The notes beneath the pieces were generated by a model. The model saw only the letters and a program-made list of their open reading frames with translations. It did no database searches and was not told the DNA's origin. Below, piece after piece: positions 1-29,459 of a stretch of DNA of 64,000 nucleotides. The number at the start of each line of letters is the position of its first letter. The first letter of the stretch is position 1. The translations under genes were made by a program, and so were the position numbers. Source of the stretch: Ylistrum balloti (lineage: Eukaryota); contig NW_026783133.1 of the NCBI RefSeq assembly GCF_031769215.1, forward strand, positions 1 to 64,000, read 5' to 3'.

Positions 1-1644
1 ATGATTTCATTTTGCAAAGACGATGTAACCCAGCGATGACCAGATTACATTGATATTTGCATGAAAATTGTGGAATTTGTTAATTTATCATAATTTTTTT
101 TTCGTCGGGGAGTGGATTCAGATTGTTGGATTTATTCTGTCTACTAATGACACAAAACTTAACCTTTCCATATAGGCTACACCTTCACACTTTTGAAAAA
201 ATCAGCAGCGATGTTATCTACACCCAATATGAATGGAACTCTTGGAACTCTAAAGTGCTTCTTGTACATGTGTCTATTACAACGGCCGTAGTAAGAAACT
301 CAGAAGATGTATTGGATCATAGAATTTTGCCGACATTCGTTTCAAAAAGCTATTGAGTGTTGTATGAATACCAGAGATATACTATACATACAAGTATACG
401 TAAAAAAAACCTGCATAAAGATACAGAGATGGGTTACTGGTCCTCGGATAGAAAATGACAGTACTGAGTAAACACATACATTGATGCGAAAGTATGGCAG
501 TGCCGACCAATGAGTAAATGTGCGAAACATTTGTTTGGACCAATAAACAACGTTTACACACAGCGGGGTTGTAGCTGTGGAAACAGGATGATTATCAATG
601 CAACTTAGTAAACCCACAGAATGAATGTCCGGTATTATTTCCTTAATGTTTTTGGTAAGGAATTCACCCATTATCACTTGATTTGCCTTCCTTCATATAA
701 GTTGGTACATATGGTCACGATTCCGAGACATATAGAGTTTTCATGTCTTTACACACTTTCCTCCATTATTTGAATTTGTGGTGATCACTGATAGTTTGTT
801 AGGCTCTAACTTCAAACTCATCATTAGTTTTCAAAACTTACAGAAACTTTCTACCATATTTGTTTTGGGTACATACGTACTCATTGCAAGATAGTTTGAC
901 ATGTCCCGTAATCAACATATATGCATGCAGTTTCCTAATGTATTCCTACCTGGTATTCGTGGGTTGTGATATCAATGTGCTTTTTTGGACCATATACTAG
1001 TATCATAATTACAGCTGCCTGTATTATATTTTCCATGTTAGTAGAATAATACTTGAAAGCATTCCATAATTTTGAAAAAGAAAAAAAATTCTGGTAAACC
1101 ATGTCGATTAAAAGCAATCAAGCGACTAATATTGTGAACAAGAAAAGCTAAGAATCATATCATCGTTTTCCTAAATGAACCGTGTTCATTCTTGTAATGA
1201 TGACCTTATAAATATTCAAAGTCGTCAAGTTTATCCAAAATCATGATATGTAGCATAGATTTCTTAGCTGAAGTGATCCAAATGACGTAAAGTCATTAAC
1301 GAAGACTTGTAAAAGAAATCCTCAGTAGTGTTTTTACATTTGACATTAATTCCCTTTTTATCAAAACGTGACATTATCATTGCATATTCCAACACTATGT
1401 AAAATAAAAAAAATTAAATTAGGGAAGAAACTTTACATAAAGGGAGAAATGATCTGTACTCGTAAGGATTATCCTGAATAATTCATAGTCTACACAACAG
1501 TGTGAAATGTACTCACATCATCTACCATCTATATATGAATATTATAGGGATATCTTAATAAACAAGATCGATGTGTGTTATGGAGGGAAAATATTGAATT
1601 GTTTTATATTATAGGTAATATATTATTGCTAACCTTTATTACAG

Positions 1645-1728
1645 TTTGGATGTTTGAGTCATGCAGCATCCGGCGGTCACATAGATATTGTTAGACTACT
1701 ACTGGACAGGGGAGCTGATCCAAATAAG
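1645..1728 (+). CDS. Ankyrin-repeat internal exon 1 (84 nt, phase 0): FGCLSHAASGGHIDIVRLLLDRGADPNK
   Basis: Branch point and acceptor gctaacctttattacag| and donor AAG|gtaagt bound an open 28-codon frame matching the ANK consensus L-x-x-A-A-x-x-G-H-x-D-I-V-x-L-L-L-x-x-G-A-D-x-N. The rest of track ORF 1654..2094 is intron read-through. Confidence 0.92.
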
Positions 1729-2409
1729 GTAAGTTTCCTTTTATTCATCTTCTTATACATGTTTTATTTATTTTTCTCAAGACATAAAATGAATTCTCTT
1801 GTTTTTCAATATCTTTTTGTTTGTAAATACATAAACTTCCGTCCCATGTCTTCAATCTCTACATTTTGCCTGCTACATGCTAATAGATTAGTAACTCGAT
1901 TGAGTATGGTTGGTGCTTATTGTTGTTTTCATGCAAAAAAGATACAGGCACTTCCAAACATAACTAAATTAAGTCATCGTTTAACATCATGTAGTCAGAT
2001 TTATTATCTTCAATCTATTCCATTACTGGAGAAATTTGTAAGCAGGTGTAAGATTGGTTTTGTAATCAATGTTATAGTTAGCATAAGTCTCTAATGATAA
2101 AGCTTAACAACTGTCATCGTTGTTGTCGTCGATACATTCATGATAAAAAAAATCATCATACACATACACAGCATACATATGTATTATTATTTTGAAAACA
2201 CATAGACCACTGGCACCACGACAGTATGCCGGTCTTTCACCTGACATGTTAAACTATTTAGATTTCCGGGTTTAGTTTATATAATTTAATGTTGTTAGTC
2301 AGAGTCTACGTTATGTTCATGTTGCTTTCTTTGTAGAGGTACCACACTGAAGTATCAGCATCTCATGAAACCACGTTCTCTCTCTTTCTCTGTATGCGTA
2401 TGTCTGTTG

Positions 2410-2413
<4 letters not shown>

Positions 2414-2467
<54 letters not shown>
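2414..2467. repeat. (GT)27 microsatellite
   Basis: Directly visible. Confidence 0.99.
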
Positions 2468-2469
<2 letters not shown>

Positions 2470-5400
2470 CTTTATTTACGAATGTGTTTATATAGGTATG
2501 AGTGTTTAGTGTGTCTGTGTGTGTGTAAAACCATCTCCAAAAATATAGCGATAATGTCGATGACCGATGATGATGAGGTGGATAATATTGATAGTGGTGG
2601 TCGTTAGGACGACAGTGAGTGAATGTAAGCGAACTTGTGGTATGTTTATATGTATGTGTGGAAAAATAAAAGAAATAAAAAAACATGCAACTGCAGGTCA
2701 GTGTCAACAGAGATATATGGAAAAATATGTTTTGATGAAGTACAAGATTAAACCTTAAGGAAAGTCCTCGATTACGCACATGCAACAGAGAAATGTAATT
2801 GTCCTCAAGTTTTTAATTTCTCAAAACATATCAATAAAATAAAAAATTCAACACTGAGAGATTAAAGTTTGGTTTTACAAGTTAGCAGAGTAAATCATGA
2901 CATTTGCAGATATATATATACTTTTTAACATTGTCCCTGTTTGTTTCATATGTGATTATTCATGAACAGCATTGGATATTATAACAAATCATTGTTAATA
3001 TTAATATTTTGTGTTAAGATACAGTAAAATGATGACCAAACTGAAACACTGTTTACGAGTTACATAATTTGTTAACAATGCGGAATTCCTACAAATCCAT
3101 TACGTTTCTTAGATCATAGCAGCATATCTTGGAATCTCTACTATTTTACGAAAAATACGAGAATCAATATATCTTGCTGATAGGTCCCTAGGAATCAGCA
3201 CGGCATGGTCGATAATTATGTACATGAGGTCTTATTTGTATAATCAGTCTAACAATATCTTCTGATTATTCAAAATGTGTATAGTTATGATATTTAAGGG
3301 AATTTGTTCCACAGATGAGATGAAGACTGATACATTTAGTGATAATTAATCTAAAATAACGGCCATCTGGGGACAGAGAGATTAAAGCGTTTAAACTACT
3401 GCTATACTTGTTTCTAATTATTCAAATCTTAAAAATCGGTAAGAGATAGTTTACATCATATTTAGCATGATGTAGGCGCGTTTCCTTATTTTAATGGATG
3501 AAATATTTCAGAACTTTCCTGTCATTATTTTTTCCTTATTTTAAGGTTTTGTTGAATATTTGTCTTTAGCTTTGGATGGCATTTCCAAAATATCCTTTAA
3601 CACTTTTGATAGGTGTGGTTTTAAGCATATGTCAGTTACTTATATTTCGTTTGATGACAAATGATTTCTAGAATGTTAATATTTCACTAGTATAACATAT
3701 AGATACTATTTCTCAGGTTGGAAAATATAGATTGTCTTGACCAACAAAAGAGGTCACAGAACTAAACTATGGTAAGACCCTTTAAATGGCCTTTAACCCA
3801 TAACCAACATACACAGGGTGACGAATGCCGACAGACGAATTACCTTCCACCATGAATACGTTATAAAAATGTACTCAGTAAAATTCTGGTTTTCAGAAAT
3901 GGTCAAAATTGTAATAGGAATCCCTATGAGCCTTATCTAAATTTATTTTTTCAAGGTGGAAAGGGTAGATATTTTACAATAAAGAATTTTTGTATTTCAT
4001 TTCACAGGGCTAAGTTTGTTAAGACTTATCAAATGCATCCTTTTAATGACCAACATGATGGCTATATTTGGCATGTCGTATACAGATACAATTGCGACGT
4101 TTGGTTTTAAATTAAAAATCATTTAACATCCTATTAACACATATCGTGATAAATGGACTACCTCCGCATGCATGCAATATAAGTGCGTGCGTTGAATCCT
4201 GCTTGAAAGAGGCTGCGGTATGTTCGTGAACGTTTTTCTATGGTAGCGTCGAACTGAAACCTACTTAATAATGGTAGCACACAGATGAACTTCCGACGAA
4301 TCCTATAAGGACCCTTCAATATGTCATAATACTACACTATCAAAAGGCGAGCCAGTCTTTAGAGTACCAACATACTTAGCATTATGCAACGGGATATTAA
4401 TTACAACGATGTGCAATGTTATTTCTTGGTCAGAGGATAAATCCAAAAGTCTTCCTGATACACCACATTTCATGTCTTAATACACCTCGTTTGCATTTGA
4501 GGAGGTGACGTTACTTTCATAGATAGACTTATATTAAGATGACCTGTGTTGTTGATGCAGTATTCCAAAATTCTATAGGTAGTTACAATGAAATGTCCAT
4601 CAATAATGTTCTACCATACTTGATCCATAACCCTTTTTGTGGTGATCAGATGAAAAGGGAATGTGAATATGGAGTTGCAAAGCTGCTAATTGTACTCTAT
4701 CTATGAATATTTCCATGTTGTATATTGGGTGAATAAACCTATACCCGACAATAAGATTAACAAGCATGAGAGCACCGGCCTCCTACATGATTAAATTGCA
4801 TGCTACGTTAACATAGTGTTATTATATCAATTGTCAGTGAATGATCAATTACCATTGTTGCATTTAAAACAGATGTCTCCTTTTTGTCATCGACTGCTCA
4901 ATTTTCTTTAGTAGAAGTACTGATATAAAACCTAACAACGCATTAATAAGTAATTTGCAATCATTGCGTAAGACTGATCATGTTATTTATGTTATAGTTA
5001 GCTTAATTCTCCAATTGCCATACAACAGCTTCATGATGAAACGCTTCAACATACAAAATACATATCAATATATGTTTATTGTTTGATAAACAATTTACAT
5101 CACAACGGTATGCAGTTCTCTCACACATGTTATAATTGAAATTGCACGGATTGTTTTTTTATGTTTTAATGCTGCTTGAAAAAAGCTGTGATATATTCAA
5201 GAACCATCCTTTGTAGTGGTACCACACTGAATTCTACTACCTAAATTCCCTAGTTGGCCACCCTATCTTATCACAATATTTCGATAACGACTGAATCTCA
5301 AAATAAAGCTAAAACAATGCCAGTGTAAAGGTACACATATAGAAAAGCTTATGTTAATAGAAGTAAACAGATTAAACCTTAAATGACTTCATCGACTAAG

Positions 5401-8400
5401 CATAAGCACATGCAATAGGGATAGTAATGTTCCAGATTTCTTATTTTCTGGAAATAATAACCTTCATGAGCATACCTCCGTTGGTTTTGTTAAAACGTTC
5501 AACACTTATAGGTCCATGATTGAGATGTAATTGTAAAAAAATGCTTGATTATGTTTCATGGTAAGCCATTTGGTTCATTTTGAAACCTAAACATGTCAAT
5601 GATTTATCTAACTGAAAAAAAAAAAAAAAATCTCTCAAGTGGCCATAGTTAAGATCTAGATGTTAAACCTGGTGTGGCCGTTACAGCTTACATACTCATA
5701 TTCGATGTTGTTCCATGTACACAAGTTTCGTTATCATAAAATTTACAGATATCCATTCACTTCCTTAACGGTGTCCCTGTTAATATCATATCATATTGGG
5801 TTGTTCAACAATGGAAGGTAATATCATAAAGAATACTGTCATCGTTACTATCAAAGTTTTGTGTTCGGATAATACTATAGTATCACAGCGAGAAGATGAC
5901 CAAACAGGAACACTGTTTAAAACTTATTACAATATGTTTACAATGTTGAATTATTACTAATCAAACACTTTTCTTGGATCACAAAAAAGCCAAAGTCGTG
6001 GAATTTGGGGGAAAATGCAACTGTGTAACCAAAAGGCCTAGTATCGTGATATTTGACTGATAGATTCTAGAATTCAGCAGGACGTGTTAAATATTCAAGT
6101 ACACACTAGTCTTATTTTTATTATTACAACAGTTTCTGGTTATTCAAAAAGTGGTATAATCATTATATATAGCAGTTTGATTCATTGGATGACATGAAGG
6201 CTGACACATTTTGCAGTTATTGTATCTTACCTACATTTACTGTCAAACGGGGTCAAATAAGTTAATGGCGTCAAACGATTTCTAATTCACAAAGATTTTG
6301 ACGGTCAATGATATAAAATATAAACATGGAAATCATTGAACACCAGTATAATCGCAAAATGTTTCAAGTTCCTTCGTTCTCTAGGAATAAATATTTGGAC
6401 ATAGGTACCTGGTGTTGGTTTGTAGAAAGTGTCTTTCAAATACATATCCCCGAATCTACACTGGCAAAATGAACAAAGATTACAAAGCGCATTATTTTCT
6501 TTGATACTATATTAGTTATAAGTACACGGTTGATATATTTACATTTGTATAGAGTAAATTATGAATACGATACAATGAATCATTGTTTCATGGTCATGTC
6601 ACTTTTCATCACTGGATTTGTAGAGCTATGCTTGTCCGTCTGCTCTGTTTTTACCTAACCAAATCCAATCTTGTGAACATCGCTGCAGAGCTTTATATTC
6701 ACCTATAAGTGTCAAAACATCCAGTTTAATCCAGATTCTGCCTTGCAGCAGTAAAAATATATAAGTGAGCTGATGGTGTAGGGCATCGTCCTAACCTCCG
6801 TCTGATATTTTGAACTTACGACTTATATAATCTATGAGACAAAAGTCACGATATATGGATGGTCGCTTTCTGGAATGCAATTGCGTATACTGAGGTGTGC
6901 AATAATGATGAAAATGATAATGGTTTCTCTGATTAAACGAAAGACAATAAATAATAATATTTGACTGACAAGTTTAAAGACAAGCAAAATGTAGAACGTT
7001 ACAAGCGATTTATTCGTATTCATCATGGTGTTTTGATGTATACTTCATTAGATAAAGTCCGACAAGAAATTGCTTACATCCATACAGTTGGCAACTAGGT
7101 TTATTAGGTATAAAAACAATAACGAAACTTATTAAATCATGACTCTAGTCCTCCCCGTATTTATATTATGACATTTCTATACATCACTTAGGATTTTTCT
7201 CAGTTGCTTTCTAGGCTTTCATATTTAGACCCATAGCATCACTTACGTTGTCAGAAGGTGCAGTTTAGTTGATCGTTTGGCAAAACTTTGTCCTACTCTA
7301 AAATTGCTGAGCATTAGAAAGGTATGTATTGTATTCTAATTGATCAAAATGTTTCTTATGATTATTAGCTAGACATTTCGAACATTTTAATACACAATAT
7401 CTGCAAGGTTCAAGGTAACAGGTCAGCTATTTTTAATCATTGTGTGTTTAATAATTCTCATTCAAGACGCCAATGTACATTATGCATGTTGTCGGTCATC
7501 GTAACATACCTCAACCTATCTCTCTTGGTACTATGCTTTGTCAAGCCATTTATTTACTTATCTATTTGTTTATCTTTAAATGATATTCTTTATCCATACA
7601 ACTGATCCAACATCTATGTATGTCTTGTTTCCGTTAGTTTTAGTCTACAGTACATACGTTTTAAGAGTTTCCGGACGTAGTGTAAACGTTGATTCCTAGT
7701 TTAAGTTAGCAATATTAATTTTCCCTTAAAACTCTGTTGTCAGATATCTGCTTTTATATTTTTCATCTCAGTCTCTGATGCTGATAACCAATTAATTAAT
7801 TACCCAAATCAGCTGAGATTGGACAGATATTTCTATCTCGCAAATAATTTTTTTTTTAGATTTTATTAAAAATGTGTTTTCTAAAATTCAGTCGGCTCTG
7901 TGTATCCCTTATTCTTAACTTAAATACAGTAACTAACGTAATGTGGTATAGATGTATGTGTATCTGATGATATATTGAAATAAATTGCCTATTTCATTTG
8001 AGGATCAATTGTCCCCTGTCTCTTTCTCAGCCTCTTCAAAACTTGAAACAGTTATGTTGGTTGTTTGGTAACAGTTTTCTCGTTGCCCTGTGTTTTAAGA
8101 ATACACATAGGATATTATTCCATATTCCCGAAACTTCTGGATAAGCAGTTTCTTCTTTGAAAGACACAGATGTATCTTTATCGTGAGAGCGTAGGCAACA
8201 GCGTTTCAACTCCCTTTCCTTGGACTAATGTTAATATGTAGTGGTTATATAAGTTAGACATTTCTGGTTGTACCATCTCGAAGCATTTCTAGACATTCGA
8301 CTGAATTACTTAACCACTTATATTAATTGCGTTCTGGTAATTCAGTCCACACGTACCGCATATATCTACACACTATTATGACTTTGTTAAGTAACTATAC

Positions 8401-10551
8401 ATGTTGATCTTCATGCTGTCCTGTGATAGAGCTTATAACTGTACTCAGGTAAAAATTGACTATTTCGCCATTGACCAACAGAGCAATTAACTAATCGGTG
8501 TCGCTGCAATTGTAGGTCATGAATCATCTTCTCTAGCTCGTGTATTCACACTGTTTGTAATGAACATCTCTTATACCTGAGCCAATTCTAAAAACGATAC
8601 AATCAAAATTAATCACATTGGTTTTTAATTTCATAAGCATCAAGATATTGTTTGTTGATTTATTGAAAACATCCGGATAAATGTATCTAAAGAAATTATT
8701 GATTAGGAATCGAGGCTCATGGACTTTGCTTACAGTTGTATGATACATTGAAATTTCTTTAAAACTCAGGCAGGAGTTGAAAGTTCTGCTGATTACATAT
8801 CATTATGAGATTCCTTTTTCATGGAGCCTGACTTTGTCAGGTTAAATGACAGCCGCGATGGTTTTCTCGCTAAACGTTATAGAAGTCAACATGTACATTG
8901 TCTATATAATTATATAATTAGCCTTTGCCAAGAGTGTCATCTTATCAATAGTTTCCAGATGTACAATAATTAAATAGTTATTTCTAAATATAACGTTTTG
9001 GTGATAACATTTATTTTTATAAGAAATTCATTCACTCGAGTTTATCTTGGATTAATTAAAATGAATGGTAACTTTTTTTTCTCTAATCATGATGTTCCTA
9101 ACACTTTATATATGAATTGATACAAGGTCATTGCATATTATGCCGGGAAATAGTTAAGATATTTCACAAGTAATACAATAGGTAAATGCCGGAGCCAACT
9201 ATTGCAAAACAAAAAAAAATCTATCTTTTCAACTCTACTAAACTGCAGCAAGATTTAGGACCATGCTATTTATGTTAAATCCCAAAGAATACCTGCTCGT
9301 TCATGGCAATACTGAATACTGATATGAATATAAATTGCCACGAAGGTGGGGTTCCAAACCATAGTAAATCGAATTATCAAACTGGATATAACGCTATTGC
9401 ATAAAACTAAGGCAGTGACTAGATTAATATGTGAAGCTAAACAATAATCAGAAATCTGTAGCTGAATATAATTCAGCAGTGTTCTTCGAAATCGCAAAGC
9501 CATTTATCTTCTCATTTGAAAAACAATATCCAGAAATATTAAACCAACATTGTCCACATGTACTTTATACAAGGTTCCTTCAGAATGTCAATCATTTAAA
9601 GTTTTGTTACACAAATTCAGTGACAAATGTGAACATGTATAGACAACTTGAAATATATCAACCTGTTGCATGACATTAAAATAATATATAATAGTCTTGA
9701 GACCTATAATCCCTAAGACAAAAATCGTATCCTGTTAATAGGAGTCAAATACTAAAAGCGATGTCATTCACATATATATGTATATTTGGTAGTTATCATT
9801 ATGAGACCTATAATCCCAATGATGCTTACCAAGAGAAATAATTTCCTCAAAAACCAACCATCAAATGATGACCAAATTAAAGCGGGAACAAGTTTTTAAA
9901 GTTATCAAAAATGTAAGTAAAACAATCATCCATGGAATGACTAGAACTAATTCCAATAAACGTTTAGGAGGCAGGTGGGGAGGTGGTGGAATTTAGGCGA
10001 GCTACCTTTACCTGGCAAATCCTCACTGGAACGGAAACTGGTTAATGCAGCAAGGGAAGATTACTCTATGCAGTCAGGGGGCATTACTCTTATCACTAAT
10101 ACACTTGAGGTTGCATTCCACCATCTCACCATTCCCCATAACGAAACCACTTAATAATGGTTTTCCATAAATAATTTTACACTATAAAAATGTTACTTAC
10201 GTTAAATCCCAAAGAATACCTGCTCTCTCGTGGCAATACTGAATAAAAACAATAACCCCGAATTGTGTGTAAATGTCGTTTATTAAATATAAACGACTTC
10301 AGGTAATACAACAATATGTAAACCCAGAGACCAATAACCCCATAGGTCTATACAACATTAGAGACATACATTAAGTAGACCCAGAGGCCAATAACCCCAT
10401 AGGTCTATATAACATTAGACATTTTAGGTCAGACATGATGATATGAATATAAATTGCCAAGGAGGTGGGAATGTGCCCCCCACCCAGGTATTTGGGACTT
10501 AAGAAATAGTACCGTTAAAAATAATCAGATGACAAAAAGCAAACAAGGCAC

Positions 10552-10848
10552 TCAGACCTGATGTCCTGTCAAGGTGGGCAAACAAAGATATCTCCGAAAA
10601 GCATTTGATTTCCACCTGCCCATCCGTTGTATTGTATTATCCGGAATACCTGACATGTGTGCAAATGATGCAGCACCGATATGAAAACTATGACTCTTGT
10701 ATTTGTGAGGGTCTAAGTTTGAAGCAATCAAATTTCTGTTAAGTTGTGTTGAAAAATAAGCCCTAGAGATAGGTTGACAATTAGGAAAACAAAATAAGGG
10801 TCCATCTGCTGCACCACGGACTTTTACATAATCTAGCATGGCCTGTAC
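10552..10848 (-). pseudogene. Tyrosine recombinase C-terminal fragment
   Basis: VQAMLDYVKVRGAADGPLF...HSFHIGAAS...IQRMGRWKSNAFRRY. The H-x-x-R box reads HSFH (Arg replaced by His), the GRW and catalytic-Tyr region are present, and the N-terminal half is missing. Confidence 0.88.
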
Positions 10849-10888
10849 TTAAATGATTTATCGTGAAGAAAATATCAATTCTACCCCC

Positions 10889-11311
10889 TTAGCTTTGTAA
10901 ATCCAGAACCGTTGGTCTCTGCTCAAAAACCAGTGACCCCAAGTCGACAAACTTGTTAGCCCAGATTTGGGATTTCCCCTTAGCATCTACATCGCTGTCT
11001 ATTGGCCATGATGTAGTACCGCTACCTGATAATTCTGAGTTCTGTCCTAACGGACGCACTAACTCTGCCATTGTAAGATCCACACTAGGAGGGTCATCAT
11101 GGTGGTTTTCCACAGGGTCATGGGCGGTAGATTCCATTGTATTACTGGCTGTCGCCTTTTCTGAATTATTGCTGGGTTTCATAAGCTCAAATAGCTTAAC
11201 CGCTATGTCATTAGCTAGGGAGTCTCGTTTACTTGGCTGTGGTACCTCCTTCGGCTGGGTCCGTTTTTTTGGCAACCAGTTTGGTTCGGTCGATTTCCTT
11301 TTCCTTGGCAT
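10889..11311 (-). pseudogene. Truncated gag-like ORF1 of the DIRS/Ngaro element
   Basis: Basic MPRKRK start, a low-complexity linker, then PIDSDVDAKGKSQIWANKFVDLGSLV, which resembles DIRS-order ORF1 as I recall the family. It ends at the internal deletion. Confidence 0.6.
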
Positions 11312-11360
11312 GTTGATTTGGTGAAATATTCAAAGATAATAATTATGCCACGGGTGATTA

Positions 11361-11868
11361 ACACTATGACAACCACTGATGTCAAATACATAATCAGATA
11401 TAGAAACAACCACTGTTGTCTATAGCAATATGACAACCACTGTTGTCAAATACATAATAAGATATACAAACAACCACTGTTGCCAATTATATATAATCAG
11501 ATACACTTGTTGTCAAATACAAAATTAGATATACCGACAACCTCTGTTGTCTATAACAATATGACAACCAATGTTGTGAAATACATAATCATATATACAA
11601 AGAACCACTATTGTCTGCAGCACTATGACAACCACTGTTGTCAAATATATAATCATATATACAAACAACCACTATTGTCTGCAGCACTATGACAACCAAT
11701 GTTGTCAAAGTACATAATCAGTTGTACAGGCAGCCACTGTTGTCAATTATATTATCCAACATACAAACAACCACTGCTGTCTGTAACGATATGACAACCA
11801 TAGTTGTTGTCACATATATGTGATCAGATAACTTTTGTTGCTGAATGCTATGACAACTACTCTTGGCA
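11361..11868. repeat. ~64-bp minisatellite with palindromic core GACAAC-CACT-GTTGTC
   Basis: Cores alternate with ~22-nt and 11-nt AT-rich linkers that resemble each other. About 8 higher-order units. Confidence 0.95.
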
Positions 11869-12029
11869 CCTGAACAGATTCGTCATTTTGATTGCACCAT
11901 AATGAAACGCTACCCCGAAAATTTCAGTTTATATACTTGATATATAAAGAAAAACACTGCTGCAATTGATCTAAGTATAGTTAAATCAGCCATACCAGAC
12001 TTGCATTGACCTATATGCATTTGCGTCAT

Positions 12030-13600
12030 GATAGATGCAAGAGTGTAATTTGTATTGCCATCTGATTGGATTTCCAGTAAATATATTGTAACCATATTTC
12101 CAATACACACTGCGTTGCTGTGACATAACATATTAAATCATGTAAAATAAATGTGAAATTGAACAGCCCTGACCATGTATCTGTACTGGTAAGTGATATA
12201 AATGGTTGAATGAACCGATTGAATACGTTTATATACTTATTTGTCTTAACTTTATAACAGATTATAAGTATGAAAGTGCATTTCATCGTTGAGACATCAT
12301 GAGACATGAATGAGATATTGCAGTAATGGTTCTGTACACTTATTTCAGCTAAAGCTGTGTTTGTTTCCTGTGCTTATACATAACAATCAATCAATCAATT
12401 TTATGGGGGAATTTGTTTAGATATTTTGTCAGGTGGTTTCAATTTTTTTCTTATTTTTTTTTTTTTTTTATAAACATACATTTTTAAGGTAGTATGTCAA
12501 AACATCATATACACATGACATAATTATATATTAAATAATGATGATTCAATGCAGGTATATTCAGCATGCCATTTGTATTGATTCTTAAAAATCATTATTT
12601 CAGAAATCTGAGTAATCAATAAGTAATCAATTAAGCATTATGAAAGATAGCATTTTGGTATTTCTTGAAAAAATACCCTATACACCTCGATATTGCGGGT
12701 ATAATCGATGCAAAAAAACTGCATTAAACTAGATAATGAGTAGTAGGGGCCACGTTGACAACGTGGATACCAAGAATAGGGCTAATTATCAAATCAGTGA
12801 CTTTCGTAACTATTTGTAAAGATACAAATAAAGTAACAATGTCTTTAGATGTCTCAGATTTCTATCGCCGGTTAAAGTACGCAACCTTATATGTAATTCA
12901 GACCTGTAAGCAATATCAAGCATTTACAGACTGTACAAGTAAGGATATGACCATCAACTCTTAAAAAAGCTTAGTTAGCATGGCTCATTATCAATTCAAA
13001 CAGGCATTGATATATGGTATCACCTTTTTTAAAATGGTTAAATTTCCATGAGCTGATATAACTTCATAGCATGCGGTTTACTTCTTTAGATACGCCACGG
13101 AAACACGTGTTCGAATGTTAATTTCTCTGTTGTGAAATAATGAATAACGGGTTTTCTTTGATAATAATAATTCTTATGTAATGGTACTCTGCTGAAAGTT
13201 ACATTAGATAAATTTGAAATAGCACAGGGGCTTATGCAAGAACGTGGATCATTTTGTTAGGGTATCTTATAAGCACAGAACAACCCATCTTTCAACTTCT
13301 TTAAATGAAAAAAAAAAAAAAAAAAAAAAAACTAGATCTAACTTCAGGGACATCGAACCGCGCACCTCATGTATTCCCTTGAGGGGACGAAATAATTAAT
13401 AATAGTGGTCTTGACCTTTAACATGCCTGATATAATATATTACTATATGAAATGTAAAATGTTATCGAGCTCTCTTTAGTAAGCTGGTAAAACGAAAAAA
13501 AAAAAAATAAAATAAAAAAGATTAGCCAGCACGTGTATGCTAATATTGGCCACTACAAAATAACAGCAAAGAATGTATTGAAATAACCTCCTGCATTATG
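12030..13600 (+). repeat. Non-coding module A (six copies, both orientations)
   Basis: Homologs at ~24297-24978(-), 25040-26350(+), 45340-47290(+), 51730-52980(+) and 54090-55400(-). Confidence 0.85.
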
Positions 13601-14369
13601 GACGCCACGATGTATACGATGCGGTAATTTCCATGAGCAATTTGACTAGATCGCGTAATCATATGATTTTTTTTTTTTTTTCGTTTTCGTAATATCTTTA
13701 TGAGTTTCAGGGCTAAAATGTACAATACCCATGAATAAATACATACATGTGTATTTAACTATTAATAAAAGCATCAACACCCTAAACAGTTTTATTTCCC
13801 AAACGAGAGCTGGACGACCCGTCACTACATATCGTGCTCCTTATAAACTAATTTTGGAAGGTTACTTTTGATAAACACACATTGCTCCACCCGCTATCAT
13901 AGAAGCATCTACGAATAGAAGAAAAGAAAAAAGACAAAAGAAAACATTGATACATTCATGTTGATTGACATTGACATCAATGTTGATTTTTCAAAAGTAT
14001 AAACGTGTAGCCTATACGAACAGGGAAACAACCGCGTCGACAGAATGAAACGAAAATCGCGCATCATCATGTGATTTAATCTCCCCTTTTAAAATCGAAT
14101 TAAGAAAGATACTAAAAAAATCATTACTTTTTGAATACTTAGACAATGCTTTTCCTGGTGTTACAAAGTTTGCATCACATTAATATCATTCCGTTTTTGT
14201 ACTTTGCAAAACTATGTCGATGTTAATTTTCCACATATTCTTGTCAACTAATTTAAGGCACAGTGCACATGAACCCGAAACATCACTATAATGTGTGGGC
14301 GATACATATGAAGAAAACCCATGAAAATCTGTTCTGACCTATTCTAGTTTTATTGTTAAATAATGCAAA

Positions 14370-14860
14370 CGTTACCTATTCGTTCGAGACATATAGAGTT
14401 TTTATTGTTATACCTCTTTTCTCACTTTCCTCCATCATTTGAAGTTGTGGTGATCACTGACATTTTGTTAGGCTCTATCTCCCATGTCATCGTTAGTTTT
14501 ATTGTTTAATGAATTCACTTGTTCTCCATTCTTGGATAAGACTGGTCTTGCAATCAATTTTATAGTCTCCAATGATAAAGCTTAACAACTGGCGTCGTTG
14601 TTGTCGTCAGTTATCTTATAATAAAAAAAACATTTTCTTATACACAAACACAGTAGACATACGTAATATTATCATGAAAATACAAAGACAACTGGCACCA
14701 CAACGATATGCGGTCTTTCACATGTTAACAGCTATTTCAATGTCCTGCTATAACTTACATGATTTAATGTTATAATGCTGTTTGTCAGAGTCTACGTTAT
14801 GTTCATGATGTTTTTTTTGTAGTGGCACCACCCTGAATTATACTAATTATATAGGTTTGA

Positions 14861-14948
<88 letters not shown>

Positions 14949-15660
14949 ATTAATGTTAAAACAATGGTTTGTGAATTTAAACATCAAAAATAAAATGGAT
15001 ATAAAAACATACAGCTGCAGACAAAAGCAAGGCCAATGCCAATGGAGATATATGGAAAAATACGTTTAGACTAGGTCCTCGATTACGCACGTGAAACAGA
15101 GGGATGGCAATGTTCCTCAATTTTCTTAATTTCTCAAAAGCTTATCAATAAAAACCTTTGTGTTGAAAAAATCAACACTTAAAGATAAATTTGCAGAGTA
15201 AATCATGGCATTCGCGGAATGTATTATTTTTATTAACCTTTCCCCTGCTTGTTTCATATGTGATTGTTCAACAACAGAATGTAATATTATTATTAATCAT
15301 TGTGAAAATCAATATTTTGTGTTAGGATAATCTTATAATTTCACAGTTATAAGATGACCAAATTTAAAACACTGTTTACAAGTTACATGGTAATTTGTTA
15401 ACTATACGGAATTCCTTCTGATTCATTATGTTTCTTAGATCATAGAAACAAATCTTGGAATCTCTACTATTTGTTGGAAGGTCCCTAGGAATCAACCGGA
15501 CGTGATCTATATTCAAGTACACGGTCTCTTATCTGTTTTTACAGTCTAACAACATTTTACGAATAATCAAAATGTGTATAATTATGATATCTAGGGGATT
15601 GTGTCCACGGATGAGATGAAGACAGACACATTTATATTTCGACAAATAACATCCTGGGAA
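14370..15660 (+). repeat. Exon-less paralog of the exon-1 neighbourhood
   Basis: 14390-14510 matches 725-830 and 14570-15660 matches 2094-3340, including the GT tract. The ~1.2 kb holding the exon is absent. Confidence 0.85.
14861..14940. repeat. (GT)~40 microsatellite with one interruption
   Basis: Directly visible. It lies in the same duplicated module as 2414. Confidence 0.99.
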
Positions 15661-18625
15661 CTTACTACGTGATATAGACTAATTTTATTATACTTGTTTC
15701 ACATTCTTAAAATGACCATTATAAAATCAAGACTGCTGTGTTTTCAGTGACCTGTATCAAGTAATTAAAATATATATAGTTATATTATTCTTCATTTAAT
15801 ACCAATTACGTCTACATATTTGTCATACAACCGTATTAGAAACTGTGAAGGAAGTTGAAAATCGCGATATCAAAGCTTACATACTGAACTTCTAAAGGGC
15901 ATTATTTGTTTGTTTTTTGTATATTTTTTTGTTAAAGGTTCACCCGATGGCGAAAAGGGTTTCTAGCATAGGTTGTACCTGATATCAATTTACATATCGA
16001 CTACGGATTTATGCTTAGTTATGAGAATACATATGACCTAAGGAAAATCCCATAGGTTGTTACAGTGATATGCCCGCCAATAATGTTCTATCATACCTTA
16101 TCCTTAACTCATTTGTTTAGTGATCGGACGTCACTGTCCAGTAGAAGCATACTATCAAAAGGGAACCCGAATCATTATTTGGAGTCACCTAGCTATTAAT
16201 CTTTCTGTATCTATGAATATGTTCACTTTGTATAATGGATGACAAAAAACAACAATAGGATTAACAAGCTGGAGGGCGTTGGTCGTCCTACATGATTTAA
16301 ATGCATGTTACGTTTACATGATGATAACGATTGCATGTGAATGACCAAGGATCATTGTTGCATTTAAACAGATGTCTCCATTTCATCATCGACTCGTCCA
16401 TTCCCGTTAGTAGAATCATGATAACAGTAGATGTTTTCAGTGCAACTACTCGTAGCTATATTGTAGGACTGGCGCTGGCTTTACTCCAACATCATAGGCC
16501 CCTAGTATACTCTACATCCCTACACATTATGTTTCATGTAACACCACCCTAATATCTGGTGTTCAACAATGAAATACTAGCTACTAATTTATAGACTCTG
16601 GTATGTCTCAATAAGTTTGAAAACAAAAAAGTCTTCCTAACAACAGAAATCGAATTTTAAAGGCAAAACTTGAAGCAATGTATTAAAGACAGGAAAATGC
16701 AGAATAGACAATCGAAGTATATATATATTAGGTCATAATTTTTTAGAGGATTGGTGCATTCTATTTTCCTCATATTAGTCTCAAACCTACCCCAAAAATA
16801 TCGCCTCGTTTACATTGGCATATTGTGAAGGTCATAGAGTGAAATAGATAGAAAATGTATCAAGTTCTTTCCTTCTCAAGGAACAGATATTCGGCCAGTA
16901 GGCATCAGGTTTCGGTTAGTAGAATGTGTTTTCCAGATGTATTAGCTGGAGTGAACATGGATACAAATGGACACGTTTACATTTGTACGGAATAGATTTT
17001 AAATAATATACAATGAATCATTGTTTATGTTACATGCTTATGTCTTCTTCATCACAGTAGTTGCCAAATCTCTTCTTCTCTGTCCTATACTTAAAGGTAT
17101 GCACAATTTTTTTTAGCGAGAGACTTCAAACATTTGATTAAAAAGACTCTGATAAAGTACTATGATCTTATTTCAAGGTAACAGTTCAAATTTGTTTTAT
17201 CATTGTATGTTTTATTAGCCTTATTCAAGGTTCCAGTTTACATTACAACTTATATATTGTGTCGTAGCGTGACCAAATACTGTCTTTCTTGGTTCTATGT
17301 TTTGTCAAGTCATCTATATATTCATCTATTGATATATATTTTAACTGCAATTTCTCCCCATGCTATGGACGAAAGAACAACATCTAAGATACCTTAAGTC
17401 CAAACTAAGATGTTGATACAGTCGGTAGAGCCATATATTTAGGCTCGTGTATTTACCCTGTGCACAAGGTATATCTCCTATACATGCGCCAGTCCTAAAA
17501 AAACATGCGGAACTCGTGGACTTCAATAAGGTGAATTAGCATTATCCTAGATATTGATATATGTATCCTTAAACTTTAATGCTTAAACCGTATGTTGTCA
17601 AGATAATAACAGATTGGACCACATGTATTTGAAGAACATTGTTTTGTGATGGCATATAAAGAAGAAAAAAGTTTCTTAAAGAAATTGTGGCAGTCTGGAT
17701 ATTGGAACACAAAATTTGGTTGCAATTTGGTGATAAATTCATTACAATTAGCACTAATCTAAGTTCGAGACATACCATTACATAACATAATCGAGTTTTG
17801 ACACATAGCCTGACTGTGTCATAGGTTTAATGACAGCTGCGTTTGTCTTTTCGCTATTCATTGCAGTTGTGCATTGTGCAAGTGTATTACCCCTCCTGCG
17901 TCCACTGGTGTTAACTCATACATGAAAATATTTTTCAGATGTACTATAATTAGGTATTTTTTTTCTAAATTTAATGTTTCAATCTTGTAAGAAATAGTGG
18001 GTAAAAATGAACTGATGTGTCAAGTCTTTCAAAAGCTGTAAAGTTATACATATAACCCACCGATATATCGGATATGTAATTAATTTCAAGGTTGATTTGG
18101 CAATGTTTAAACTACATTGGCTTGATATTTGCCCATAAGTTAATGTACATACGAGGGCACTGGTTTGTTGATTTATTAGGTCAAAATGCCTGAGGGAAAC
18201 ATGGGTCTATTGTATTAGAAAGTTTAAATGGCTCTCTTTGATTAAACCACAGGGCTTTAAATCAGAATATTGGTTTTAAACTTGAAAAAGGTAACGACAA
18301 CAATGACATTGATCAATATTGGTGAGAAAAGCAGAACATTTCTTCGAAAATTTCAAATGATCTGAAATCACGATATTTGTGCTTAACAGATCTTTTGATA
18401 AAATCTGATGCAGTTTGCAAATAGACATGACATAGTCCCGTATACAAATTCATCAATTTTCAAAATTATTTGAAATTATTCCTTACGATTTACTAAACAT
18501 AATGAAATCATTATACAAATTTAACTTGGAAGCATTTAGCCCAGGTACTTATCTATGTTTCCTTAAATAGCAAGCTTCAAGTTTACAAACCCGCAATTTG
18601 TTGAGGGTTTTTGACACACCTGCTA

Positions 18626-18733
18626 CAGCTGTGTGTTTCGTTACAGGGCCATAATATCGGGAAATGATCTAAGATTTATATTATGATTTGGCAAAGCAGC
18701 TGTGTGTTTCGTTACAGGGCCATAATATCGGGA
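18626..18733 (+). repeat. Perfect 37-bp direct repeat with a 34-bp spacer
   Basis: cagctgtgtgtttcgttacagggccataatatcggga at 18626-18662 and 18697-18733. Confidence 0.95.
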
Positions 18734-21639
18734 CCTAATATATAATAATATATAACGACTTATCAATGAAAATCATTCTATACAACTGATAATAATAAAG
18801 AGAAAAAAACGAATTCCGTTTTTCCCTACCAGTATATTGTATTTTTTTGGTATTGACTGATTTCACTACTTTTCTTAGCGAGGCTACAAACTTGATTAGA
18901 ATCAAGCGATAAGTCGTTTCACTATGGCAGCCAGGAAAAAAGGCCAATTTCGTAAGTGAATCATTTCACAAGTAGATGAAGCTAAATTGACTGATTTCAC
19001 ATCGCGAAGTCATCAGTTTGGCTTACTAAGTCTGAGTCATATATGATCTCTAACAAAATCTCGGATCACTTCACTTGCCTTAAGTCACAACATCAATACG
19101 ACGGATACGGAACTTTGTGGGAGAGAACTCGATATAATATTAGGAACGGAATAACTTAGACAATACATCTTCCTTACAATGTTCAACTTCATTGGATTAC
19201 TTAAATGATTCCTTCTATGTCAAGTAGTTAAACACAATTAAACTTTACTATTACTTGTATTTTATTCAATTTCTGATCATGGAAAATGCGATGTACTAAA
19301 TTTATATAGATTATCAAAATAGCGTCGGGCATTTAGTACACGAAGACATCGAGAAAGTGTTTTGACCAATCTTCAAGTTTTTTTTTATTATTATCAAATC
19401 CGTATGATATCTTTACACTTATCATAAGACATGTATTGTTTAAAACCAATTAATAAAATCTCCCTTGTAGCTTAAAGTACGATATCGTCATAACTTGAAA
19501 GGCTCATCAATTTTTTTCGAGACTGTAAAATGTAAATGAATGACACCTAGCCTTAAGCCTGACCATAGTGTTGAAGTTGCTAGTGAATGATTGACAAACT
19601 GTTTTTTTTTTTAAATCTAAAATTCCATAGGGTCTTCTTCTCAGAAAAGTTTGCGGTAACACAGATAGTAATTTGTTGAACACTCTACATGCCTCACATA
19701 CAATACAATTTCCATTACACTTCCAACCTGACTGAAGCAGATTGGATAATATGGCTAATAGTCAGAAGCTTGGTAGAAATGTTTGAAGTTGTCATTCTTC
19801 TTAAAAGGACCTAGGAATAGTTACAGTGATCTTGACTATACAACTCAAATATAGCGTCAGATATCATCGTCATTCAGGTGTTGAAAGTATGATTGACATT
19901 TCGTAAGAAATAAAGTCACTATAACACTGATAATGGATGTGCCTAAGTACATTACAAATGAAAAGAATATCATGAATATTGGGACGCTTTTGCGTGAAAC
20001 TTTGGTTTCATCCAAACATATGTTCTGATCTTACCTCAGTGGAATTGCAGGCTCTCTATTGCATACATTCACTGTCTTTGAATGGGGATAGAGGTAGCTT
20101 CATAGCTTTTCATCACATGTACATACTGGTAATATATGAATTGTATGGTTTGATGAAAATCAAAGTGGTTTAATATATATGAACTATGTGGTCATGGAAA
20201 TAGGTCAAAGTAAATCATACGAGGAAAAGCTGTAGTTGTTTAACGCAGAAACGATCTTTTAGAGGTAGAGGATCATTGCATAAAAGCGTGGGGTTTCGCC
20301 ATGTAGCGTTAATTCGTTTCACAGTTACATATTTTACTCGTTTGCATTTGCTTCAAACTTTCTAAAATTAGATGAAAACAGACGGATGGCCATTATACAA
20401 AACACACACCAAATTCAAAGCCGTCCGAAATATAATGGTTCCTTATCGATGAATGAGATGTCATGAAAACCCTTCAAATAATTAAGCTGCTAGAACGTTG
20501 ACATGTAGCAGGTTAACCTATGTACATATACATTTCTGTGTATCCACATTAATACATTAAGTTCATTAAAGTGTGGTTTTCTGCTGCCTAAATTTTATTT
20601 TGGTTGTAAGTTAGGGGAAGCGGGTTATATTGCTATCTGTCCCATTCCGAAACAATGCACTATTTTAACAGATCACCCTCACTTAACATTTCTTCTTAAT
20701 CACTGAGTAGTTTACTCTCCTGTTGAAATTACACTCGATGATTCTGCTTATTTACTACCTTTCCCTGTCCGCTGCTGCCTCAGATTTATCGTGTTATTGG
20801 CAGCGGTATAATTGTAGTATTAAATATTAAAGATCAAAGTATATTTCCTCCTAAAATATAGTTAAAATTTCCCGATTGTGATATGCTAGAGAAATAAAAC
20901 GACACTTTCCCGGTTGTTTTCTCCTATCGCCTTCATTTGCACCTTCTAGTATAAGCCGACCTTCGTTGAGATTTCATTTTTTTTTCAAATGTAGTATGTT
21001 CATATATATATCAAATATACATTGCACGATAGTCAGTTAAGATCTCCACTTCACTGACGAAAACATTAGTGTACATATACAAGTGTATTTTCTATTTCCT
21101 CCTTTTTAAATGAGGTGCGTTAAATGGTTTCATATAAGAAAAGTGGGTTCTGTGAGAAAAATATGGAAAAGTATTACAAATCAAATTTAAACAAATGACA
21201 TCATATAATTTGATTATGGATCCAAAGAACTACACACCAATTACTATATATCATTTCTGTCCTGGTGTAAAAGTGAGTTTTTGTTGAAAAGGTAAGTGGC
21301 ATGAGACTTCTTTGATTTGGATCACATGGTGAATAAAGTAATTACATATATATGCACATATAATAACAAATACTAAATGATTTTCGCGAAATGAAGCGTA
21401 CTTCCTGAAGCATTACTCATGACATTTCCGTGATGACATGCTTACAGTTTTTGTTTCACCATGTCCAGATGAGGAAACTTTAAATGTCATCAACTTAAGA
21501 ATATAGTTCTTTTTAACATGTTTTTCTTTAGTTTTATGCCCTTGGTACATGTTAGGTTATATGTAAACAGGGATAATGGGTTCGGTGACTGACGCCTTCA
21601 TGGTGTCAGCGTGATAGTACAAACGTTTGTATCATAGAG

Positions 21640-24120
21640 CTAGCAGATGCATTTATTGGAAACTATGAAAAAAGCTGAAAATCGTGATATCAAAACCTGG
21701 CATACTGAAGTCCTAAAGGACATGATACGTTTGACTATTTCTGTATGATCAAATGTCCACCAAAGACGGAAATTTGCTACTATATGTTGACTTATTATCA
21801 GTTTACATATCGTCTCTGAAGATAAACTTGTTGATGATATGACATCCGCAACACAAATGTTCGATAGATTGTTATAGTAATGTACCCTCCAATAATGTTT
21901 TGCCATACATTATCTTTAATCCATTTTATTTGTGATTGGAATTCGCTTTACAGTAGGGGCATACTCTAAAAAGGGGAATCTGAAACATTAAATGGTGTCC
22001 ATCAGCTACTTATTATACCACATCTATGAATATATTTATTTTCGCATTAACATTATGATAACTGCAAATCTTTTCAATACACTATTATATGTGCTTTCTT
22101 CACGTTCCATTGACATATTTTACTTCTTACAAAATACTATACACCAGCAGTGACATAGTGGACATGCTAGAATAAAGAAGAATCCTAGGTTGAATTAGAG
22201 TTATATATAATGTTAAATGTCCTATCAACAGATTTAAAATGATTACCAAAAAATATTAGCTACACTTATATGAAAAGCAGCAAGGAATTCCGTTTTCATT
22301 CAAAGCAAACGATTTATTCGTATTAATCATGTTTTTTGATGTATGAGTCTAGTCCACCCCGTGATTGACATTTCTATACACCAATTTGAAGGTGCAGTTA
22401 AGTTGATTGTTTGGCGAAAATTTGTCTTACTCTAAATTTTCTCAGCATTAAAAAGGTATTTACTGTATTCTATTGGATCAAAGTGATTCTTATCATGATT
22501 ATTAGCTAGAAACTTCGGGCATCTAATACACAATGTCTTTAACTAAAGTTCAAGGTAACAGGTCAACTTTTTAATCATTGTGTGTTTGATAATTCTCATT
22601 TAAGATGCCAATGTACCTTATACATTATACATGGTGTCAGTCATCGTGACATAACTATCTCTCTTGGTACTATGCTTTGTCAAGCCATTTATTTATTTGT
22701 TTATCTTTAAATGATCATTTTTATCTTTTCAACTGGTCCAACATCTATGCATGTCTTGTTTGCTTTAGTTTTAGTCTACAGTTCATACGCATTAAGAGTT
22801 TCCGGACGTAGTGTAAATGCTTGTTCCTAGTTCAAATTAGGAATATAAATTTCCTCTTAATATTCTGTAAGTCAGGTACCATATCATTCTTAAAAAAATA
22901 TATTGTTTTTTCTCTAGTATAACAAGGATGTTCACGTAGTCAAGCGTAACCTTTTTCATTACTATTATTATATTTTTTGTGTATTGTAACATTTCTGTAT
23001 TTGTTCGTTTAATTTGTTGGGACATGGTAAAAGATATATCTGTTAAGTATGCTCATTTTTTGTTACAATCGGTTCAAATTCAATTCTCATTGAAAAGTTA
23101 TCTTTTTTTATATATTTTGACAATTTTTATATCAGTTTCTGCTGCTGATAACCAATTAATTGATCAAATCAGATGAGACTGAAAAGATCACGCAAACATT
23201 TTTCTGAGATTTTATTAAAAATGTGTTTTCTTAAATTCAGTTCCCTCTGTGTATCCCTTATTCTTAACTTGAATACAGTAACAACCCTAATGTGTTATAC
23301 ATGTGTATGTGATGATGATATATTGACACGAATTGCCTATTTCATCTGAGGACCATGTGCCCCCTGTCTGTTCTCCAGCCTCTTGAAAACTTGAAATCAG
23401 AGTTATAAGTGTCGTTGGTTGTTCGGTAACAGTTTTTCCCGTTGCCCTATGTTTTAAAAAAATACATGATCTCATTCCCTATTCCCTAATATTTTAGATA
23501 AGCAGTTTCTTCTTTAAAAGACACAGAAATATCTTAATATTGAGAGCGTGGGCAAGAGCGCTTCAAGTCCCTTCCCTCGGACTAATGTTAGTATGTTGTG
23601 ATTAGATAGGTGTTGTTGCAGTTATAATCAGCAAAACATTTCTGGTTGTTCCATCTTGAATCAGTTGTAGACATTTGACTGAATTATTTGACCATTTATA
23701 TCAGGTGCCTTCTGGTAATTCATTCCACACCATTCATTCATATCTACACACTCTTCTGACTGTGTTAAATAATGATATATATGGATCTTCATGTTGTCCT
23801 AAGATAGAGTGTAGCAAAGAGAGAACAAGGCAGAATAGATTACACTCGCAGTAGTAATAGTATTTCATTATATATCGAGGATCGAAAAACTGATTCAATC
23901 TCCTTCATTCTCCAGGAATAGATATTTGGCCAGTAGGTACCTGGTGTCGGCTTTTAGAAGTTGTCTTTCAAATGCATAATCCCGAATGTACATTGGCGAA
24001 TTGAACAAAAATTTCAAAGCGCATCATTTTCTTTGATACTCTGTGAGCGATAACGATACGTTTGAGATATTTGCATTTGTGAAGAATAAACCATGAATAA
24101 GATATGATCAATCATTGTTT
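21640..24120 (+). repeat. Older internal duplicate of intron modules
   Basis: Homologous to 4560-4730, 7000-8450 and 6340-6600, to parts of 15830-17030, and to 48380-50930. Confidence 0.8.
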
Positions 24121-27100: not shown

Positions 27101-28364
27101 GTGAAGGTGACTTCCTAATGAAATAGCACTTTCATGGGAAATATAGCGTATTATATAAATAGTTTGCTTGGATCCCACGTCAAAATAGTTAACGTTCATA
27201 GCTTTATGATATGTATTTTATATAAATTAATACATGCAAGTCAAACATTACGATTGTTGTTGAAATAAACGGTGACCGCATTAGAACTGTAAAAGCATAT
27301 TATCTAGTTGGAGCAATTGTATTTTTCCTTAACTTACAGGGATATTTTGTTTCATAGGTTCCATTTTTGAAAAAAAAAAATAAATAAATACAACATCAAT
27401 TGCAGATAACATTCCTCTATCATTTTTTTTTTTCACTTTTCATGTTGAATATAACAGTTTTGTTTATGCTTATTTCTTTTATCGTTTTTTTTTTTTTTTT
27501 TTTTTTTTTAGTGGTTTGGTAGTCGATGCTTCGTCGACATTAATTTATTTATTTGCGCTAAGTACTTGAAATCATACTTAAAGTTTAGACTTAATTAAAT
27601 TTTAATGTTAGAATTACAAATGCAATTACATTCAAAATTATTAACAAATGATACTTTCTGTAAGATATTGCATTCAGAGTTTATCTTTCTTATATTGTTT
27701 AAAATAGAAAACCATTTAATAAATTACATATAAATTTATGGTTTTGCATCATATCACATTCACATATCTGATTAAAAACCAAACTGGTAAGTTACAATAA
27801 TACAGGTACACAATGTACACACTGATGGATGTTAAGCAAGGGTATCATAACCATTTATGTCATTTAATTTTGAGTTTGAATTTAGTAAATTACATGTAGC
27901 ATGATTAAAATCACGCGCGTGCTGAATTTAGTGGGGTTTTATTATAAACATTTTAAACTGTTCCACTTTTATTCGACCTCAATATTGACTAAATTATGAA
28001 GCATCTAATCATGAATTGAAGAGCAAATCTGACACACAGTTGACATATGAAAAAAATATATAAAATGATATATAATTAGACCAATCAACAAGGTTTATAT
28101 ACCACAGGGTAATGATTGTGGAAACAGGGTGATTATTGATGGGATCTAGTAAGCACACAAACTTATTGCCATTTATCTATCAATTAGTATTATTCACCCA
28201 GTATCTACGCAATGGTAGCAAAATCATTCACTTGATTTGCATTCCTCCGTACAGTTTGCTACATATGGTCAAGATTATCTCTCTTTCCTCAATCATTGGA
28301 GGTTGTGGTGATCACTGACAGTTTTTAGGCTCTAGCTTCTCAGTTATCTTTAGTAGATCATTGA

Positions 28365-28915
28365 GTTCAAGATCATGCTGGACCTGCGTATTCCTTCGTC
28401 TAGAGCTCCGACAAAAAGTTAATTTTCTACATATCCTTATAACTGGATATAAGTGGACGGTTGATTAGTTTGTAACATCTGACTTCTGAAATTCAAAATG
28501 GATTTGTGTAATTAGGCAGCTGAAGTTAGGACAATGACCTGAGACCCTACGTAGTGACTACTGTTAACGGCGTACTATATACTGTACATATACATACCCG
28601 GATTGCTATATCTGTGAAATATATGGACACTAGAACAGACTTGATGAAATCACTGCCATGCTATCTACCCTCATTACAAAGGGAGACTTTGATTCCAAGA
28701 TAAAGAATCTCAATGAAAGTATCGGAGAGGAAAACATGGAATAAATGGATGAATTGAAAGGTTGAGTTTTTGAATTGGAAATGGAAAACGAAAATCTTCG
28801 TCAGACGTTGTAACTTGGAGACACAAGTCAGTAATTTATAGTGTGTAAAGGAGGGCATGGATGCCCGTTATAACGACTTGGAACAACACGGTCGAAAGAA
28901 TTCAAGAACAATTCT
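28365..28915 (+). mobile_element. LINE 5' end / ORF1 remnant (coiled coil plus NDLEQHGRKNS)
   Basis: Heptad-rich frameshifted sequence ending in the LEQxxRKNS motif typical of the start of the ORF1 RRM. The left end is approximate. Confidence 0.65.
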
Positions 28916-29459
28916 TCATCGGACCGGTTGAGGAACGTGTGGACAAAATCATGAATTGTGTGTCTTCATAACTTGCTATGCTCGTATAGTAGCGTGGGCG
29001 GCAAGCTCTTTACATTCCGGAATGATGGAAGAAAAATACTTTTTTAGGCCATGACACTAACGGACTTAAGGAAGATTCCTATTTCTTATGATTGTAGATA
29101 TGCATTTCTCTTGGTTTATACCGATCTTATTATGTATGCATGTAGATATGCATGTTTCTTTGCTATGGATGGTTTGTGTTTTGTGTTATATGGGACCAAA
29201 ATTCTGACGTTTGATAAGCCTACAATATATAAATCATTTTGTTACAGTAATTCGTGCTTTAGTGATCTGCGGGTATGGTCCTAGTGTAATCTACCTGATG
29301 TGATAAAGTATGTATGTTGCCAGTATTCATTATATGATGACAATGGTCATAGTATGTTTTCACTTTCTCTATCTGCTCTGTTTCTCTTTGTCTCCGGGAT
29401 TGATCAACTAAACTTGTTCTTGAGGCATACGGCTGATTTTTTTTTTTTTTTTTTTTTTT

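Follow-up and report, generated by a model that had tools for sequence, protein, structure and literature searches.

Candidate 28-residue ankyrin repeats without a beta-hairpin finger, encoded by tandem cassette exons in the scallop Ylistrum balloti

The genome of the scallop Ylistrum balloti harbours a family of ankyrin-like cassette exons whose codons stop short of the beta-hairpin turn, and we consider it rather probable that the live members of this family are spliced directly to one another, with no turn supplied from elsewhere, to give finger-less repeats of 28 residues. Ankyrin repeats are among the commonest of protein-recognition modules; their beta-hairpin "finger" is counted as half of the binding surface, and surveys have portrayed the repeats as intolerant of deletions. 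If our reading is true, a helix pair alone suffices to build a solenoid and recognition can be concentrated on a single face of one helix, so that engineered binders might be built on a smaller scaffold. Such repeats would then occur in a scallop and, as a by-product of the present analysis, in fungal NACHT proteins. The localised nonsynonymous variation among scallop copies that are otherwise about 99% identical makes the family a candidate for a fast-evolving recognition system of bivalves.

The stretch of DNA analysed here (hereafter the window) comprises the first 64 kb of an unplaced contig of 115,851 bp (C1276), in a genome of 648.5 Mb with about 33% G+C. A six-frame scan together with tblastn located three live cassettes in it, all on the plus strand (Table 1), and it is to these three, of which A1 and A2 are copies inside one tandem duplication, that the "every exon" of a first-pass annotation of this DNA refers. 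Scored singly against the Pfam profile PF00023, the window exons reach 27-30 bits (cut-off 21.1); the acceptor of A1 is preceded by a pyrimidine tract. Residues 4-27 of each exon align to profile positions 6-29 of 33, so that each exon corresponds to positions 3-30 and the beta-turn (positions 31-33 and 1-2) is left without a counterpart. Extension of the exons by 15 nt is blocked at both ends, either by in-frame stops (the nearest lie five codons upstream and six codons downstream) or by the lack of AG or GT where one would be required, and hence a 99-nt version of the exon is impossible. The first-pass annotation had claimed that the ankyrin exons all lack the same five residues, and for these 84-nt, non-extendable window exons the claim is borne out. 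No other coding exon was identified in the window, its two longest open frames having no Pfam match.

Table 1. Cassette exons, putative introns and duplicated units in the 64-kb window
Feature	Position	Strand	Description
Cassette A1	1645..1728	+	84-nt phase-0 exon, FGCLSHAASGGHIDIVRLLLDRGADPNK; bounded by ttattacag and gtaagt; Pfam Ank 30 bits; family profile 67.8 bits
Cassette A2	34338..34421	+	Duplicate of A1, FECLRDAASGGH...; AG/GT-bounded; three nonsynonymous differences from A1 (codons 2, 5, 6)
Cassette B1	62358..62441	+	84-nt exon, SEALAKAARKGHLEIVKLLLDREANPNT; bounded by ccag and gtgagt; Pfam Ank 26.9 bits
Dead C-type cassette	56187..56270	+	Two in-frame stops; GT donor absent
Putative 32.6-kb intron	1729..34337	+	71 open AG-15-GY candidates, none x[DN]xxG; longest open frame without Pfam match
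Putative 27.9-kb intron	34422..62357	+	66 candidates, none x[DN]xxG; contains the dead cassette
Duplicated unit, first copy (carries A1)	1..11744		Self-BLAST
Duplicated unit, second copy (carries A2)	32696..44042		Self-BLAST

The 84-nt length is not a matter of chance: other contigs carry four diverged types of cassette in which it is found again. Searches with single cassettes and with a gapless profile of 28 columns, built from 13 cassettes, put the family at about 35 members in the scallop genome; members score at least 51 bits against this profile and ordinary ankyrin repeats at most 36. An ordinary ankyrin exon of the same genome, also with one repeat per exon, measures 102 nt and retains T-A-L-H and N-T-R-D. 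Two contigs carry compact arrays. C603 has on its minus strand an unbroken run of five exons, 78, 84, 84, 84 and 81 or 87 nt long and all AG/GT-bounded, which are separated by introns of 380-660 bp and score 20-26 bits against Pfam Ank (cut-off 21.1); the first and last repeats (26 and 27-29 residues) are more divergent and resemble capping repeats. On C734, seven full-length cassettes succeed one another with a period of 1.21 kb, followed by three more. Directly downstream of the C734 cassettes lies what is left of a transposase open frame of mariner/Tc1-like type (...SPDLAPSDFNIFHNFK...; L027, C734:10323-11819 in gene orientation). Elsewhere, the C-type cassettes L016-L019 (C345:671456, C1076, C1309 and C706) still have an open ankyrin frame, but neither the AG acceptor (caa in its place) nor the GT donor survives in them.

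When the open frame of A1 was used in a word search (candidates of 84-268 aa), generic 33-residue metagenome ankyrin proteins alone were returned; a word search with the frame of C603 exon II (46-145 aa) returned no match, and a scallop multi-cassette protein is absent from the best 150 matches of an exhaustive protein search with a C734 cassette as query. The top match of the exhaustive search is a canonical ankyrin giant of abalone. Six isoforms are annotated for an ankyrin protein of Haliotis rufescens of 3,700-3,840 residues (P0026, P0176-P0180; XP_048244845-50); their lengths are graded in increments of about 33 residues, a pattern that would follow from the skipping of single-repeat exons.

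In the canonical ankyrin repeat, T4, P5 and H7 dictate the fold, G2 terminates the beta-turn, and G13 and G25 terminate the helices (PMC9611651). Aligned residue for residue with the canonical family (PF00023; ankyrin-R 1N11, consensus 1N0R, DARPins), the cassettes show the same helix-1/GH-turn/helix-2 core and the same G-A-D-x-N linker; G13 and G25 have conserved equivalents in G11 and G23 of the cassette, and P26 is invariant, as is L18-L20 in the hydrophobic core of helix 2. Where the canonical repeat has a period of 33, a beta-turn with G2, and TPLH, however, the cassettes have 28 codons (the period in the protein being that which the exons imply), no beta-turn and no counterpart of G2, and variable residues at the equivalents of T4, P5 and H7 (cassette positions 2, 3 and 5). 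Among the best 150 ankyrin proteins of the exhaustive search, repeats that follow a spacing of 25-29 residues (n=115, not independent of one another, as eight proteins give most of them) have T or S at T4 in 16% of instances, whereas repeats with the canonical spacing of 32-34 residues (n=1544) do so in 79%; the corresponding figures are 3% against 54% for P5 and 9% against 38% for H7. In nature, therefore, loss of TPLH accompanies loss of the hairpin, and by their TPLH residues the scallop cassettes belong in the short-spacing class. Deletions have been recorded in 1.4% of 1.2 million ankyrin repeats and are typically of up to three residues (PMC7314423), and the period of solved ankyrin structures peaks at 33 residues (PMC4687027); in the light of these surveys, arrays that lack five to seven residues in every repeat are a rare variant. 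Our own profile search of the PDB returned 33-residue-period ankyrins only, and in the literature we found nothing specific either on 28-residue or hairpin-less ankyrin repeats or on ankyrin microexons.

Ankyrin-like runs with periods of 26-28 residues are nonetheless present in 8 of the best 150 exhaustive-search matches. The NACHT protein P0031 has 20 repeats of exactly 26 residues each, KAF9891903.1 (P0123) of Aspergillus nanangensis has five of 26 residues, and KAI1451315.1 (P0105), an NPHP3_N/NACHT protein of Annulohypoxylon moriforme, has five of 28 residues adjoining canonical ones. Short repeats of 26 or 28 residues without hairpin and TPLH were noted in these proteins and likewise in P0046, P0167 and P0174, several of them NLR-like fungal NACHT/NPHP3_N proteins; the papers searched contained no description of this class of proteins. 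The 28-residue repeats of KAI1451315.1 have the cassette boundaries (...GADPNL/EDLLRDA...) and share up to 18 of 28 residues (64%) with the cassettes. Like the cassettes, the fungal NACHT/NPHP3_N arrays combine periods of 26-28 residues with boundaries of the form ...GADPNx/xxxLxxAA..., with absence of TPLH and with variable positions 2, 5, 6, 9 and 10. The two systems differ in that residues 63-1162 of KAI1451315.1 are encoded by one uninterrupted genomic open frame, so that no microexon is possible there, whereas the scallop has an exon per repeat; and in that the fungal arrays are joined to a STAND NTPase, whereas the scallop cassettes are known here from cassette exons alone.

These natural fungal-type analogues served as a proxy for the scallop sequence in a fold test of concatemers. 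AlphaFold2 without alignment modelled segment 736-1066 of the fungal protein KAI1451315.1 with a mean pLDDT of 83.6 and a pTM of 0.71, as helix pairs every 28 residues joined by linkers of 6-9 residues and followed by canonical repeats with 13-residue loops; Foldseek matched this model to a 12-repeat DARPin (6mol) and to ankyrin-R (1n11) with query TM scores of 0.71-0.72. Eleven 26-residue repeats were modelled with a pLDDT of 95.0 and a pTM of 0.82. The natural arrays of 26-28 residues are thus predicted to be ankyrin-like solenoids, and by analogy hairpin-less short repeats are plausible in the scallop.

The cassettes are also distinguished by where they vary. A1 and A2 differ at 3 of 84 exon sites and at 5 of 1353 flanking sites, and between copies with 99.3-99.9% identity over the 1.35 kb of flanking intron, 3.6-4.8% of the sites in the exon are different. 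Over eight A copies, 13 of the 39 sites in the first 13 codons are variable, against 76 of 1275 in the flanking intron (p=5e-7); the changes at variable codons 1, 2, 5, 6, 9, 10, 12 and 28 are all nonsynonymous, synonymous changes are confined to codons 26 and 27, and codons 14-25 are invariant. B1 and B2, the latter a B-type exon on C1276 beyond the window, repeat the pattern with 7 differences in 84 exon sites against 18 in 2991 flanking sites (p=3e-6), located in codons 2, 5, 6, 9 and 23, to which codon 24 adds a single synonymous change. An open frame and consensus AG/GT sites are preserved in each of the 13 copies of types A and B. The spacing of codons 1, 2, 5, 6, 9 and 10 (i, i+1, i+4, i+5, i+8, i+9) places them on a single face of helix 1, and the same positions are variable in the 26- and 28-residue fungal arrays. 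The hypervariable segments of the window cassettes lie at 1645-1683, 34338-34376 and 62358-62396; within them the density of differences between copies exceeds that of the flanking intron by a factor of 10-30, and every difference is nonsynonymous.

In the ankyrin repeats of fungal NLRs, sites on the concave face are under positive selection (PMC4986451), and the variable positions of the cassettes match them. Judged from the sequences, diversifying selection is the most likely cause of the cassette pattern, with short-tract gene conversion between cassettes as the alternative. Purifying selection, as it might be read from a copy on C1271, was rejected, since the low identity of the flank of that copy is due to a breakpoint lying upstream of the exon by 85 nt and not to divergence.

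We propose that each symmetric 84-nt exon would encode the pair of ankyrin helices together with a linker of six residues, G-A-D-P-N-x, that the beta-hairpin turn would be missing from the protein with no outside supply, and that neighbouring cassettes would be spliced directly, to give a 28-residue helix-turn-helix solenoid; the expected junction would join ...AATAAG to TTTGAATGT or TCTGAAGCT. Recognition would proceed through residues 1, 2, 5, 6, 9 and 10 of the cassette, which lie on the exposed side of helix 1, and new cassettes would arise from tandem duplication of the whole exon-plus-intron unit, some of them subsequently dying. We infer that the cassettes are transcribed, joined in series and able to bind a ligand by their variable face, perhaps as an immune-type sensor. 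Serial splicing is less certain for the window than for the compact paralogues, because the window cassettes stand 28-33 kb apart in a young and repeat-laden array with dead and cassette-less copies; with such spacing, on a repetitive unplaced contig and among dead cassettes, they may not share one transcript.

The first-pass annotation had offered two explanations for the missing segment, of which the one by 28-residue repeats gains indirect support from the compact arrays, from the loss of TPLH and G2 and from the solenoid models of 26-28-residue arrays encoded in a single open frame. The other, in which a hidden 15-nt exon or several smaller pieces would supply x-D-x-x-G and restore mature repeats of 33 residues, found no support and is in our estimation highly improbable. 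It draws on the fact that the missing residues fall exactly at an exon junction, and the two long window introns do contain about 70 open AG-15nt-GY sites each; but not one of these (0/71 and 0/66) encodes x-[DN]-x-x-G or is otherwise turn-like. The introns of the compact arrays allow a much sharper test. C603 introns 3 and 4 hold no 15-nt candidate at all, and in the compact paralogues every ordered chain of 3-, 6-, 9-, 12- or 15-nt pieces summing to 15 nt would encode a hydrophobic peptide, such as QWKCY, FITLF or QQFNC; in the C734 intron (1,126 nt) candidates of 6 or 12 nt are absent, and there are one of 3 nt and three poor ones of 15 nt (FGHFE, FMGVN and LALVH). No conserved island is common to the four diverged C603 introns, which have nothing but chance AT-rich 8-14-mers in common. 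Single-codon microexons may be compatible with the sequence of the cassette introns. Against a restored turn there are also the loss of the hairpin anchors G2, T4, P5 and H7 from the cassettes and the encoding of equivalent 28-residue repeats in an intron-free fungal frame. For annotation the lesson is that a "missing" consensus segment is, taken alone, a poor ground for inferring microexons.

The same exons could also be alternative ones, mutually exclusive or skipped, with one or a few entering each transcript between constitutive exons that complete the repeat; on this view the array would offer variants to choose from and would not form a solenoid. Tandem cassettes of equal length, equal phase (0-0) and similar sequence bear the usual marks of a mutually exclusive exon cluster, their variation sits on the putative binding face, and the abalone isoforms XP_048244845-50, with their steps of about 33 residues, suggest that repeat exons are skipped in molluscs. 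We nevertheless regard this use as unlikely: the cap-like, divergent ends of C603 enclose three internal repeats as would be expected of one folded domain of five repeats, no constitutive flanking exon was identified, and to our knowledge a single helix pair is an unstable ankyrin unit. A further reading is that the window cassettes are untranscribed relics of a gene broken up by segmental duplication, so that their 28-codon length would be without consequence for any protein. The contig is unplaced and repetitive and its cassettes are spaced by 28-39 kb, it also holds a C-type cassette that is dead as well as old copies of the downstream intron that lack a cassette, and a gene model was not found, either by word searches or among the best 150 matches of the exhaustive search. 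We give the relic reading little credence, however, since 13 of 13 A and B copies have kept their frame and splice sites, and since the dense, exclusively nonsynonymous differences in codons 1-13, next to invariant codons 14-25, form a localised pattern that is not one of neutral decay.

A close parallel among known systems is that of the fungal NLR sensors with ANK, TPR or WD repeats (Dyrka et al. 2014, PMC4986451). There too near-identical repeats carry a few positively selected sites on the concave face of the inner helix, and the arrays expand by duplication of units. The high inter-repeat conservation and the hypervariable sites on a putative binding face that characterise the NLR-type repeats are both found in the cassettes. 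Unlike the fungal unit, the duplicated unit of the scallop is an exon-plus-intron block of 1-33 kb, and the fungal ankyrin repeats are handled in that study as canonical, modelled on the designed repeat protein 4GPM. A bolder and rather doubtful extension is that the scallop arrays are the animal counterpart of these hypervariable sensors, with a finger-less scaffold whose inner-helix face diversifies under selection and with combinatorial exon inclusion as a possible source of many receptor variants per locus.

The units that carry A1 and A2 form a 32.7-kb tandem duplication of 98% identity, in which self-BLAST matches 1-7519 to 32696-40180 (98.07%) and 7863-11744 to 40180-44042 (98.1%). Cassettes are 28-33 kb apart in the window and 28-39 kb apart on C1276 as a whole, where two further exons, B2 (101377) and one of A type (111215), lie beyond the window. 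DNA flanking the A cassettes is confined to eight related contigs, which indicates one locus together with unplaced copies or haplotigs; the idea that a dispersed mobile element carries the cassettes was rejected on the same ground. The second duplication unit contains, at 53336-55404, an inverted copy (98.6% identity) of a 2.07-kb segment at 25040-27107, and the units have thus been rearranged in addition to being copied. The intron segment that immediately follows the A cassette also exists in older copies, 71-76% identical, at 14537-14841 and, on C1276, at 75758-76070 and 83954-84545. None of them is preceded by a recognisable cassette, and by their sequence they are probably leftovers of earlier rounds of unit duplication.

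A sequencing run (X1) covers positions 1-6000 at about 50x, evenly over exon and intron and with no joints, and must accordingly be one of DNA. It carries A>C at 1722 and T>C at 1725, both synonymous (CCA>CCC and AAT>AAC); the copies on C345, C321 and C1309 have the same bases in codons 26-27, so that the variants probably derive from a paralogue or from another haplotype. Contigs assembled from this run break at a long (GT)n microsatellite (2405-2530) in the intron, about 0.7 kb downstream of A1. A tandem array with a period of 64 bp occupies matching places in both units, with about 6 copies at 11365-11744 and about 10 at 43654-44288, and has expanded in the second of them.
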